NCBI GenBank assembly: GCA_001179505.1 | Contig: CDMY01000989.1 | Coordinates: forward strand, 62,001-126,000 | Direction of reading: 5' to 3' | Source: Vitrella brassicaformis CCMP3155 | Taxonomy: Eukaryota > Protista > Chromerida | DNA: 64,000 nt | In this document: positions 54,563 to 61,874 of the stretch, piece by piece | Position numbering within the stretch: position 1 is the first letter of the stretch | Layout: each line of letters starts with the position of its first letter | Notes under the pieces: model-generated | What the model saw: only the letters and a program-made list of their open reading frames with translations | Databases searched by the model: none | What the model was told of the DNA's origin: nothing | Made by a program: the position numbers and the translations under genes

Positions 54563-55244
54563 TCAGTTGTCTTGGATGAGCGTTCGGCGAATCTTCGCCT
54601 CTTTGTCGACGTGTATTTCGAAAGCGTTGTTGGCCCAATTAAACTCTCTGCTCACACACATACACACGGACAGAATAGCAAGCATAAGTGTAATTTGGGT
54701 CTCTTGTTGTCTGCTCATGTGGATGCCCTAATCTCGTCGGTCATACGCTCACTCCTTCGCCCACTCGACTTTGAAGTTAGTCAGCACATACTCCTGCACA
54801 CACAAGGACACCGCACACGTGCACGTCTCGTCATATATTCATGCCCGCCAGCTGCCTGCCCTTCTGCTCACCTCATCGACGCGTGGGTGGCGGGCGAACT
54901 TATCGACACCCCTCCCAAACACGCACACCTTGATGTACCCCTGCTGCCCTACATGCACACAAGATATGGCCACAGCGGCTCATCCCCTGGGCACATTTTT
55001 ATTCTCCGTGTGTGGCTTACGCTGTCGTCGCTAAGCAGCATGCTAAACATGCGCCCCACCCGGCCGTCCCGCTTCATGTAGTCTTTGATGCCCCCCCTGC
55101 ACAATTGAGGCATATACATGAGGTCGTGTGATGTGTTGTCGCTTGCGCTTACACGCGCCTCACACGCCCTCGTATGGCCGTTCGTCGGCCGGTCCTTCTC
55201 CCCACCACCAGGTCCATGATCCGGACCTCAACCACTGCACTCAT
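54563..55244 (-). CDS. Stand-alone RPA70 DBD-A-like OB-fold protein (120 aa, 5 exons)
   Basis: Exons 55244-55153, 55096-55021, 54940-54872, 54793-54753 and 54647-54563 (92/76/69/41/85 nt) are all GT-AG and phase-consistent. Product: MSAVVEVRIMDLVVGRRTGRRTAIRGRVRRVGGIKDYMKRDGRVGRMFSMLLSDDSGYIKVCVFGRGVDKFARHPRVDEEYVLTNFKVEWAKEEFNWANNAFEIHVDKEAKIRRTLIQDN*. It resembles RPA70 KLFSLELVDESGEIRATAF..VDKF..KQF..NDYEM. Confidence 0.82.
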
Positions 55245-55429
55245 GTGCAAAAACATCCATCACACATTGCATGGTGCTTTGCTGATGCATTCCTCTTGCA
55301 ACGAGCTTACTGGCGGTACGGCGGGGGTTGGAGTTTCTTCGTGTTGCCTTGTTGGCCAAACAGATCACCAGCAGCAGCGACGCGAATTGTGGAACACACA
55401 CACTCCGCTCGGTTTTGACCCCAAGTGGG

Positions 55430-55830
55430 GCCTGAAAACCCTTACCCTTGAAGCGCAAACCCTACTCTGCCCACCACCAACACACTAACCAAACCAAACT
55501 CCTTCGCCTCCCTTCACGGGCAGATCTACCTTCGGTTGACTGTGCCTCTCGTCGGCGAGAGAGATCTGCCGCACTCGTCGGTCAGCCAGCCATGACGCCT
55601 CTCTCTCGACAACGGGATCTCCTGGACTTGCGGCTGCCGACACCGGAGCATCCCTCTCCGTGTGCTGCCATTGCCCTTCAGCAGCCGCACTCGACCAACG
55701 ACCTGCACGCCGGGGCTGCTGACACAAACCCGAGCAGTGAGCTCCAAACTCGCGCAATGCCACACGACGGGCGAATGACACCTGTGCATCTGTCTGCTGC
55801 AGACACACAAAGGGCTGTGTTTCGCTTGCT
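55430..55830 (+). repeat. Promoter and 5' part of partner gene, inverted homolog of 60600-60970
   Basis: agatctaccttcggttgact..gagagatctgccgcactcgtcggtcagcc..atgac is shared in opposite orientation. It includes AAACCCTA at 55457-55464 and TAGGGTTT at 60939-60946. Confidence 0.85.
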
Positions 55831-56039
55831 TCGTGAGCGGAGGGCTTGGCGCTGATTGCGGACATTCTGTGTGGCCGGGGCACGCACACGGCGGCGACTT
55901 GCCTGTGTCCATCTCTGTGTGTGTGGATGTGTGTATCAGGCGTCGAGGGCGGTTGGTATCGGCGCATCACTTCACATTCTCTGCAGATAAGTCGCGTCTA
56001 CTCATCGACGGCACGTCCGTCTCACACGAATTCTCCCGT

Positions 56040-59518: not shown

Positions 59519-60079
59519 ACAGATTATCGCTATGGCAATGCAGCCGCCGAGAGGGGGAGCTACGTGGCTTGTCGCCCGTCATCACATTCTACGCCATACA
59601 CACCCTCACAGGCTCTTTACGCATGCAGGTTTGCGCGTGTTTGTGTGTTGCATGCAGTTGCGAGGGAGGTGCCCTGCGTGCGACATGGGTGCTGTGTATG
59701 CCGAATCGCTGACTGACCCATCGGCAGATGATGGTCGCCAATTCGGTCGCCTGCGGTTTCTGCGTGTATGACTGTGTGTGAAGGCGTTTCTCACTGCTGG
59801 ATGCAGTTCACTATGCATTGCTGGGTCGATAGCGTCCACAATCGAAAGACACACCAGATGATCGTCAATGTTGTCTGGAAGCCCCAAATCTAGGGATGTC
59901 TTCACACACCTTCCACGCATAAAAAAAGTCATCCCGACCCTCCGCAACACCTGACACGCACGTATCGGCCACACACGGAAAAGACAAGTCAGCACCGCTC
60001 CTGTGGAAGACAATGCCAGCTGTCTGTCAGTCTACTCACCCATCACATTCACATCAGAAGCGACACACACACACGCACA

Positions 60080-60825
60080 CCACCCACCTACAAGGCACCG
60101 CCCCGCCTCCTTCAAGGCTGCTGATCATCGGTCACCTCCCTGTCTCTCTCTCTACCGCCCCACTCACACCTCGCCCATCCCCCCCCTCACCCATATGTGA
60201 TTGGCTAGTAGAATGCTCTTTGCCTGCCGTACTCATCCGTCCACACCCCGACGGGCTGTGGTGGCACGTAGAGCACCGCCTGCAGCACGCGCCAGCCGCC
60301 CCTGCCGCTCGACACTTTGGCGACGGTCTCGATCGACGTCATAGCCGGCCGATGACTGGACTTGATTGACCTGTGCGGCTGATGGGAGTCGGTATCTCGC
60401 ACATCACACACACCACGTCTGTCCAGCCGCCACTCACCTGCACCAATCAATCGCCAACACACAGACATACATATGGCTGCACTAAACTGACTCGACCGCC
60501 AGCTCACGTGTCACTTACCTTCGTGGCCGTCGATGAACACTTACACGCAGCTCTGACCTGATCAATGGCAACACACACCCACACACACACACACACACAG
60601 ATGTCTCGATTGCCTTCTGTGTGTCCGTCTGACTGTCCATCCAGGTATGAACAGACGCACACAGCAGGTCCCGAGGCCAGTCAGCGCCGATGGGTCGGTG
60701 TGCAGCTCCGTCATGCAGGTCGTTGGTCGAGTGCGGCTGCTGAAGGGCAATGGCAGCACACGGAGAGGGATGCCGCGGACCGGTAGCCGCAAGACCAGCA
60801 CATCCCGTTGTCGAGAGAAAGTCAT
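60080..60825 (-). pseudogene. Partner gene of unknown function, inactivated
   Basis: MTFSRQRD.. / GQSCV*VFIDGHEG (TAT->TAA versus the 54 kb copy) / EWRLDRRGVC..WRVLQAVLYVPPQPVGVWTDEYGRQRAFY*. Head-to-head with the 61159 OB gene. Confidence 0.5.
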
Positions 60826-61158
60826 GGCGGGCTGACCGACGAGTGCGGCAGATCTCTCTCGTCGACGAGAGGCAAAGTCAACCGAAGGTAGATCTCGCTG
60901 CCGGGAAAGGTGGCCCCAAACCCTTGCTGCGGGCCAAGTAGGGTTTGCGCTTCAAGGGTAAAGGTTTTCCAGCCCCCCGGGTGCGTCTCGGAATCAGATC
61001 GGTGGGCTCTTTCGAGGCCATCTCTGTTGCTGCTGCTGACGCTCTCTCTTTGCTGCTGCGGCGTCAAATCGTTTCAAACGAAACTCGTCTGCTGCCCGAC
61101 ACTGCCAAGAGTAAGGCCCAGTTCGAGGCCGAACTCCATGCGCAACGCTCTTTTGTGT

Positions 61159-61874
61159 ATGGCTGCAGTGGTCTGGGCGCCCATCACCGACCTGCGGCCG
61201 GGCCGGAGGGTGGGGAGAAGGGCCATGAAGGGGATCGTCACCCGTGTGTAAGCGACAAGCTCATCTGTGCCCAATCTGTGCAGATCGCCGACCTCTCGAT
61301 GCACTGATGCATGAGATGCTTTGGTGCATGCATGCATGCGCAGGAGCCCCGTCAAGGCCTACAGGAAGGGGGACGGCACACAGGGCCGTATGTTTAGTCT
61401 ACTCATGACGGACGAAAGCGTAAGCAAACGAATACGCACACATGATGAGGGCTCCACGTGCATTATCATGTGCATGCAGGGCAGCGTCAAGGTCTGTGTG
61501 TTCGGCAATGGGGTGCTCAAGTTCAGCCACCATCCGCTGCCGGGCGAGGTGAGCCGAAGGGAACGGGCACCATGAGTGATTCCGAGACGTGTACTTGTGT
61601 GTATGTCGTTGATGTGTGTGTGCCCTGCGTGTGCAGGAATTCATCCTGACCAACTTCAAAGTGCTCCCCGCAAAGCAGTGAGCAATTGGATGTCAACCAC
61701 AGAGACATACACACACACTCGTACACGGCCGGAGCAGGGCTGTTATGTATGTGTGTGATATGTGTGTGATATGTGTGTGTGTGACCATGCAGAGAATTCA
61801 ACTGGGCAGAGAACGCTTTCGAGGTGCACCTCGATGGCGCGCCGCGCCACATAAGTGTCCGAGTGTGCGTGTGA
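61159..61874 (+). CDS. Stand-alone RPA70 DBD-A-like OB-fold protein (118 aa, 5 exons)
   Basis: Exons 61159-61247, 61344-61419, 61480-61548, 61637-61677 and 61793-61874 (89/76/69/41/82 nt) are phase-consistent. Product: MAAVVWAPITDLRPGRRVGRRAMKGIVTRVSPVKAYRKGDGTQGRMFSLLMTDESGSVKVCVFGNGVLKFSHHPLPGEEFILTNFKVLPAKQEFNWAENAFEVHLDGAPRHISVRVCV*. Confidence 0.82.

Follow-up and report, generated by a model that had tools for sequence, protein, structure and literature searches.

We identified two intact single-OB genes in the window (the whole 64,000-nucleotide stretch of Vitrella brassicaformis DNA analyzed here), each having five exons and a GT/AG exon model, and additional decayed copies separate from them. 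Copy A (54563-55256, reverse strand) has a first exon that starts at 55244, or at an in-frame ATG at 55256, and ends at 55153, followed by exons at 55096-55021 (76 nt), 54940-54872 (69 nt), 54793-54753 (41 nt), and 54647-54563, the last ending in a TGA stop codon. Copy B (61138-61874, forward strand) has a first exon that starts at 61159, or at an ATG at 61138, and ends at 61247, followed by exons at 61344-61419 (76 nt), 61480-61548 (69 nt), 61637-61677 (41 nt), and 61793-61874, again ending in TGA. All eight introns have a GT donor and an AG acceptor, and the intron phases (2, 0, 0, 2) are the same in both genes. The exon model of copy B matches residue for residue a public V. brassicaformis protein of 125 aa (CEM38574.1; A0A0G4H492), labeled “OB domain-containing protein”; for copy A, no model was found in the public protein sets searched (by word search and by exhaustive HMMER search). 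The initial annotation of two intact genes of ~120 aa, both with internal exons of 76, 69, and 41 nt, is thus borne out.

Copies A and B share 62% amino acid identity (104 whole codons compared) and 65% nucleotide identity in their exons, aligned without gaps; their introns are not alignable (57% identical, 70 positions gapped). Although synonymous changes have reached saturation (pS 0.72), pN is low (0.26; Fisher p = 5e-12), giving a dN/dS of about 0.13-0.36 (bootstrap 0.07-0.35), an average across a long history that would still be compatible with one of the copies having recently escaped constraint. The proteins have therefore diverged while both genes remained uninterrupted, as had been claimed, and the ratio lies well below 1, the value near which the genes would be read as neutral relics. 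Judged from these comparisons, A and B are old duplicates that purifying selection has maintained.

The decayed copies, which had been placed at 43260-43797 and 38060-38330, are also present. Copy C (43302-43798, reverse strand) is a pseudogenized member of the B lineage that keeps exons 1 to 4 and has lost exon 5, with lesions of -1 in exon 2, +1 in exon 3, and +11 in exon 4; its dS from copy B is 0.32, and in the public annotation it forms the C-terminal part of a chimeric model (CEM38559.1). Copy D (about 38060-38225, reverse strand) is a stump consisting of the end of exon 3 and an internally deleted exon 4, and copies C and D are partners within a tandem duplication of ~5.2 kb. A locus so rich in local duplications and decayed copies, together with the missing public model for copy A, could suggest that one or both of the small genes are relics without expression, or artefacts of gene prediction, with frames open by chance. 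We consider this unlikely, since both reading frames and each of the eight splice sites have survived despite the saturated synonymous sites, pN/pS is at most 0.36, and the much younger copy C already carries three frameshifts.

We searched the PDB with phmmer, and the best match was the DBD-A of yeast RFA1 (1ynx, E = 6.5e-5), followed by Ustilago (4gnx_C, E = 1.8e-4) and human (1jmc/1fgu, E = 8e-3) RPA70, all in the DBD-A range. In a search of 1.84 billion proteins, eukaryotic RPA70 matches checked with Pfam likewise aligned CEM38574.1 at the DBD-A position, which in those matches is spanned by the PF02721 model. Against Pfam, the PF01336 match of CEM38574.1 scores 17.1 bits, under the gathering cut-off of 27. 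The AlphaFold model (pLDDT 84.1, pTM 0.77) has RPA70 chains as its top Foldseek matches (9pd4_N, 4gop_C, 1fgu, and 1jmc; E = 3e-8 to 4e-7), and the superpositions (TM 0.76-0.78, rmsd 1.7-2.4) indicate a five-stranded OB barrel. Residues F70 and F101 of CEM38574.1 fall in nearly invariant columns of the RPA70 alignment and E109 in an invariant one; we take them to correspond to the DNA-stacking F238 and F269, and to E277, of human RPA70. Copy A carries equivalents of all three, and both copies keep the basic L12 loop; lysine 263 of human RPA70 is not conserved in either copy, as read by eye from the alignment. By sequence, predicted fold, and conserved aromatic residues alike, the product of either small gene is one DBD-A-like OB fold, as had been claimed.

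Searched in full at the DNA level and with six-frame protein translations, the 72.7-Mb genome yielded small-OB copies at this locus only. The single-OB “family” is thus one locus with two live members. Outside the genome, a word search for other close relatives returned CEM38574.1 alone, and the exhaustive HMMER search of 1.84 billion proteins found the broken paralogue CEM38559.1 as the sole close relative; those short HMMER matches that were traced to their sources proved to be incomplete RPA calls from short contigs. Our literature search found no paper linking Vitrella to RPA. A conserved block lies 5′ of each gene (55427-55731, reverse strand, for copy A; 60692-60976, forward strand, for copy B), with a core that is ~95% identical between the two and, in a genome-wide search, confined to this locus. 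The block of copy B terminates in a motif resembling a 5′ splice site, and a candidate 5′ exon would end at about 55440 for copy A and 60960 for copy B. An Rfam search for non-coding RNAs in the block matched nothing except, spuriously, miRNAs at a CA repeat, and its alignment comprises two copies, too few to judge covariation.

Between copies A and B, which flank it head to head within 6 kb, lies an OB-OB-PARP gene whose second OB fold (57362-58022, reverse strand) has introns at places homologous to those of the small genes. Its exons are at 58022-57912, 57812 (or 57819)-57755, 57685-57617 (69 nt), 57534-57494 (41 nt), and 57426-57362. The initial annotation had given the fusion gene internal exons of 65, 69, and 41 nt; the places and the 69- and 41-nt exons stand, but the 65-nt exon (57819-57755) breaks the frame, whereas an acceptor 7 nt downstream yields an in-frame exon of 58 nt (the corresponding exon is 64 nt in a near-identical broken OB-PARP copy 56 kb away). 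The PARP identity itself was searched exon by exon, with nothing in Pfam at E 0.01 and nothing in the PDB for a 207-aa ORF; the last catalytic ORF has only weak matches to PARP4 and tankyrase (E = 0.05-0.7).

We compared copy A, the PARP gene, and three Vitrella RPA70 genes exon by exon. An RPA70-like gene on C282 has all four intron places and phases of A and B, with exons of 73, 69, and 41 nt, and the genes on C260 and C358 have three and two of these intron places, respectively. Because the same places and phases occur in the canonical C282 gene, they were inherited from RPA70 and imply no special link to PARP: the shared intron positions show descent from RPA70 DBD-A generally. In this respect the earlier reading needs correcting, since the introns do not single out the PARP gene. 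In piecewise identity, A and B share 26-29% with the PARP OB and 20-29% with the Vitrella RPA70 genes, so that the PARP OB is no closer to them than the RPA70 genes are. What would suggest a closer tie is adjacency and three short motifs that are common to A, B, and the PARP OB and absent from the three RPA70 genes: GR-x-AM (strand 1), IKVC-x-FG (strand 3), and L-[TA]-[ND]-F-x-V (strand 4).

The adjacency, the three motifs, and the basic L12 loop, which is kept in A and B and missing from the PARP OB in its in-frame 58-nt reading, could all be accommodated if the small OBs acted in trans on the OB-OB-PARP enzyme, whether as partners, decoys, or regulators, for example by supplying or masking an ssDNA-binding surface. 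The two other OB-PARP loci argue against this: within the fetched flanks (about 5-10 kb on each side), no small OB gene accompanies either the one on C465 or the broken copy, and local duplication alone would yield the adjacency. The co-occurrence with PARP domains that the initial annotation had proposed to check was thus seen at neither locus, and we regard the decoy or partner role as improbable; any link of A and B to the adjacent enzyme is speculative. More conjectural still, and with little in its favor, is the idea that the small OBs and the OB-fused PARP (and RING) form one Vitrella-specific ssDNA-signaling module, in which free DBD-A-like subunits would tune or compete with OB-tethered ADP-ribosyl or ubiquitin writers on exposed ssDNA and the upstream block would co-regulate both small genes.

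The surroundings of the genes indicate that their products would be stand-alone proteins. Comparison of RPA70 proteins with the window gave no match outside the small OB copies, and the genome’s matches to PF16900, used for DBD-B, are on C358, C260, C465, and C282, with none on C989, the contig of the window. A six-frame search with PF08646 (Rep_fac-A_C) for the zinc-ribbon-bearing DBD-C returned nothing at E 0.01, which is weak evidence because the same search missed the genome’s own RPA70 genes; the 125-aa length of the protein and the convergent neighbor gene speak more strongly against a DBD-C. With no RPA domains nearby, and with an exon of a convergent dehydrogenase gene ending 226 nt beyond the stop of copy B, the additional downstream exons that the initial annotation had allowed for were not found. 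Helitrons are known to carry RPA-like OB folds and the region holds several duplicated blocks, but we reject, as very improbable, both an origin of the small OBs as transposon-borne (Helitron-like) RPA fragments and their belonging, as exons, to a larger RPA70 paralogue with several OBs, since the OB copies and likewise the flanking blocks are confined to one locus, no transposase or helicase Pfam domain was matched in the ten longest neighboring ORFs scanned (of ~40 listed), the contig has no REPA_OB_2 or Rep_fac-A_C exons, and the 3′ side of copy B is closed by the convergent gene.

We consider it probable that copies A and B are genuine, free-standing genes, which arose by DNA-level duplication of RPA70 DBD-A exons and were then retained by purifying selection. 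The duplicated unit would have been the four or five exons that specify DBD-A in one of Vitrella’s RPA70 genes, and the product a protein of ~120-125 aa with one RPA70-type OB barrel. We infer that it may bind single-stranded DNA (or RNA) over a few nucleotides via two stacking aromatics and the basic/aromatic L12 loop. DBD-C is the trimer core in canonical RPA, so the A and B proteins, which lack it, should be unable to join the RPA heterotrimer; having neither DBD-B nor the N-terminal domain either, they would act alone, as oligomers, or with another partner. Isolated DBD-A binds ssDNA weakly, so binding by A and B may require oligomerization or a partner.

Among known systems, the DBD-A of RPA70/RPA1 (human 1JMC/1FGU, yeast 1YNX, Ustilago 4GNX) matches A and B best in both sequence and fold, and shares with them the aromatic stacking residues and, in the Vitrella gene on C282, the intron places and phases. 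The small proteins differ from RPA70 in standing alone at ~120 aa, lacking DBD-F, DBD-B, and DBD-C, and hence, presumably, the tandem A-B high-affinity unit and the trimerization core; their identity to the DBD-A domains of Vitrella RPA70 is only 20-30%. The single-OB SSBs (hSSB1/SOSS-B, 4OWW/5D8F; Sulfolobus SSB, 1O7I; archaeal short RPAs, 3DM3/2K5V) resemble A and B in size and in having one OB per polypeptide, but they have partner-binding C-terminal tails, which A and B lack, and belong to a lineage separate from genes that derive from RPA70 exon duplication. They also occur among the Foldseek matches with weaker scores (E = 1e-5 to 4e-4, TM 0.57-0.65, against 0.77 for RPA70; for example, 5d8f_B with E = 2.4e-4 and TM 0.58, and 4oww_B with E = 4e-4). 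We rejected an hSSB1/SOSS-B-type identity, since these matches are well below those to RPA70 and hSSB1/SOSS-B is absent from the phmmer matches in the PDB. The single-OB proteins of plants with DUF223 (PF02721) are likewise RPA70 DBD-A-derived OBs outside RPA70, but the PF02721 model does not match CEM38574.1 even with the threshold relaxed to E 10, and the Vitrella genes form a single locus and are not dispersed. The Vitrella OB-PARP fusions (the OB-OB-PARP gene in the window, the one on C465, and the broken copy 56 kb away) use the same type of OB module, and the gene in the window also shares the exon structure, whereas A and B lack any effector domain.

Copies A and B are thus a lineage-specific paralogue pair with a known fold, one of which (copy B) is already annotated publicly. 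They provide a clean case in which exon-level duplication isolates one domain of an essential protein that has several, and selection then keeps the product. The OB modules in A and B and in the OB-PARP genes suggest that RPA-like OB folds have spread in a lineage-specific way, and the pair adds to the signs that RPA-type OBs have been reused repeatedly in Vitrella, as free proteins and in PARP fusions. If they do bind ssDNA, A and B would represent minimal SSBs that a eukaryote has derived from RPA70.

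The window, positions 62001-126000 of contig CDMY01000989.1 (C989), contains two intact small genes, copy A on the reverse strand (exons at 55244-55153, 55096-55021, 54940-54872, 54793-54753, and 54647-54563) and copy B on the forward strand (61159-61247, 61344-61419, 61480-61548, 61637-61677, and 61793-61874); both models were read off the sequence, and their coordinates were checked by script. The initial annotation had described two intact genes with exons of 76, 69, and 41 nt, and our five-exon models bear this out: these are the internal exons of both copies, the intron phases (2, 0, 0, 2) are common to both, the donors are all GTAAGC or GTGAGC, and the acceptors are all CAG. 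The exons of A and B can be aligned with each other, their introns cannot. Copy B is not new to databases: its product is identical to CEM38574.1 (A0A0G4H492; Vitrella brassicaformis CCMP3155), annotated as an OB-domain protein, and the public model differs from ours only in its start (ATG 61138, seven codons upstream of 61159). For copy A, an in-frame ATG lies at 55256, four codons upstream of our start.

Each gene encodes a single OB fold similar to DBD-A of RPA70, as proposed initially; PDB matches, alignment position, and predicted fold agree on this. Whole-protein searches were run with the 125-aa public protein of copy B (P0001) only, and copy A, the PARP gene, and the RPA70 genes were compared exon by exon. 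Pfam returned a sub-threshold match to PF01336 and nothing else. Using phmmer against PDB sequences, the first match was yeast RFA1 DBD-A (1ynx, E = 6.5e-5), followed by Ustilago and human RPA70 DBD-A and archaeal RPA OB folds. An exhaustive search of 1.84 billion representatives gave 191 proteins with E ≤ 0.001, among which the sole close relative is CEM38559.1 (P0002, 274 aa), which contains the decayed copy C; the best-scoring after it are multi-OB archaeal RPA-like proteins (scores summed over three or four repeats), and in the eukaryotic RPA70 matches checked with Pfam, P0001 aligns at their DBD-A. A predicted 5185-aa protein from a 227-kb ENA contig (P0005) has 15 separate OB-like stretches matching P0001. 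A MAFFT alignment with 15 database matches also places P0001 on DBD-A, with G51, D60, and E109 invariant and I16, F70, and F101 nearly invariant. F70 and F101 correspond to the pair of phenylalanines that stack on bases in human DBD-A (1JMC structure), and K66 to R234; both A and B have a basic L12 loop containing a single aromatic residue. AlphaFold2, given this alignment, predicted a confident OB barrel (pLDDT 84, pTM 0.77), for which Foldseek ranked RPA70 chains at the top (E = 3e-8, TM 0.77), ahead of Teb1, hSSB1, crenarchaeal SSB, and POT1.

The genes do stand alone. Downstream RPA exons were sought and none was found: contig C989 carries no REPA_OB_2 (DBD-B) or Rep_fac-A_C (DBD-C) signal, the 150 matched proteins align nowhere in the window except at the small copies, and in exon 5 of copy A no GT follows the conserved core before the stop. 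On the opposite strand, convergent with copy B, a D-isomer-specific 2-hydroxyacid dehydrogenase exon (62103-62786, reverse strand; PF02826, E = 7e-17) ends 226 nt past the stop of B.

A and B are not neutral relics, given two 120-codon frames and eight intact splice sites outlasting synonymous saturation. The dN/dS comparison suggested as a check was made with Nei-Gojobori counts exon by exon, summed over 104 codons (split codons and unalignable C-terminal tails dropped); it gave a pS of 0.72 (saturated), a pN of 0.26, and a Jukes-Cantor dN/dS of 0.13, well below 1 (bootstrap range 0.07-0.35; raw pN/pS 0.36; Fisher p = 5e-12). Decayed copies lie at both places named by the initial annotation, on the reverse strand, one per unit of a tandem duplication of ~5.2 kb. 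Exons 1-4 survive in copy C (43302-43798), with a 1-nt deletion in exon 2, a 1-nt insertion in exon 3, and an 11-nt insertion in exon 4, but there is no recognisable exon 5; all that is left of copy D is a stump at about 38060-38225. Between B and C, dS is 0.32 and the ratio 0.52, C being already broken. The public model CEM38559.1 (43302-45134, reverse strand) is a chimera joining upstream exons to the frameshifted C; its N-terminal part is membrane-anchor-like and Thr/Pro-rich.

An expanded family had also been suggested; the 72.7-Mb, 1064-contig genome, searched with DNA and with protein in six frames, yielded only A, B, and C, at this locus, the counts being lower bounds.

A partnership with the OB-OB-PARP enzyme, encoded between A and B on the reverse strand, is unsupported beyond adjacency. 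A second OB-OB-PARP copy, 56 kb away on the same contig (L009 184-2215; C989:182184-184215), is near-identical (85-100% per exon) but broken by in-frame stops and 1-nt indels, and an OB-PARP locus on contig C465 (L006 4850-6354; ~48850-50350) has a REPA_OB_2-like (DBD-B-like) OB exon followed 1 kb downstream by PARP catalytic exons with 28% identity to the window PARP; no small OB gene was found in the fetched flanks of either. PARP catalytic exons occur at about ten other genome loci, that on C465 among them. The 65-nt PARP exon initially proposed (57819-57755) has an entry phase of 2 and an exit phase of 1, whereas the 69-nt exon begins in phase 0, so that the frame is lost; an alternative acceptor 7 nt downstream gives a 58-nt exon, open into the 69-nt exon. 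In the broken copy its counterpart is 64 nt owing to a difference of 1 nt, and the following exon has a 1-nt insertion. The intron phases of the PARP OB (the second OB fold of the enzyme) are the same as those of A and B under either frame-keeping reading.

The introns shared with the PARP fusion, initially read as a sign of one ancestor, are indeed at the same places and phases, but this is not specific. At least three RPA70-like loci exist in Vitrella (contigs C282, C358, and C260), and intron retention was compared in three such genes (L007 5700-6500, L005 6500-7150, and L004 5620-6300). The C282 gene has DBD-A exons of 73, 69, and 41 nt and all four intron places and phases of A and B; C260 shares introns 1-3 (exons of 67 and 69 nt), and C358 introns 2-3. 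The DBD-A introns kept thus differ among these genes (four, three, and two). Because their intron places and phases match, A and B are genomic duplicates of RPA70 DBD-A exons, not retrocopies, and the positions common to A, B, and the PARP fusion are RPA70 heritage. Over four exon pieces summed, A and B share 26-29% identity with the PARP OB and 20-29% with the three RPA70 DBD-A domains (the Vitrella RPA70s share 39-44% among themselves). Three short motifs are common to A, B, and the PARP OB and missing from the RPA70s; taken with the adjacency, they make a shared local ancestor plausible, though not demonstrated.

A conserved block lies upstream of both genes (55427-55731, reverse strand, for A; 60692-60976, forward strand, for B), about 230-470 nt 5′ of the start codons. 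Over a core of ~190 nt, the A and B blocks are ~95% identical, in contrast to the saturated synonymous sites of the genes. The block was found at this locus only, has no Rfam match, can form two long hairpins, and ends in a donor-like motif, CAAGG|GTAAG. Candidate explanations are conservation as a promoter or 5′ exon, or gene conversion between the inverted copies. Further inverted blocks (59980-60396 with 49481-49880, 60389-60583 with 54013-54211, and 59941-59983 with 53900-53942; 84-95% identical, this locus only) flank A and B in different orders, suggesting local rearrangement or conversion. A four-copy tandem array of 121 nt (41751-42447) and nested inverted repeats spanning ~2.7 kb (46230-48985; arms 78-85% identical) also lie in the window, with no Pfam domains in the ORFs scanned there.

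Overall, A and B form a pair of DBD-A-only paralogues of RPA70 that is lineage-specific and maintained by selection, accompanied by two dead copies, and their proteins probably act outside the RPA trimer as small ssDNA binders.
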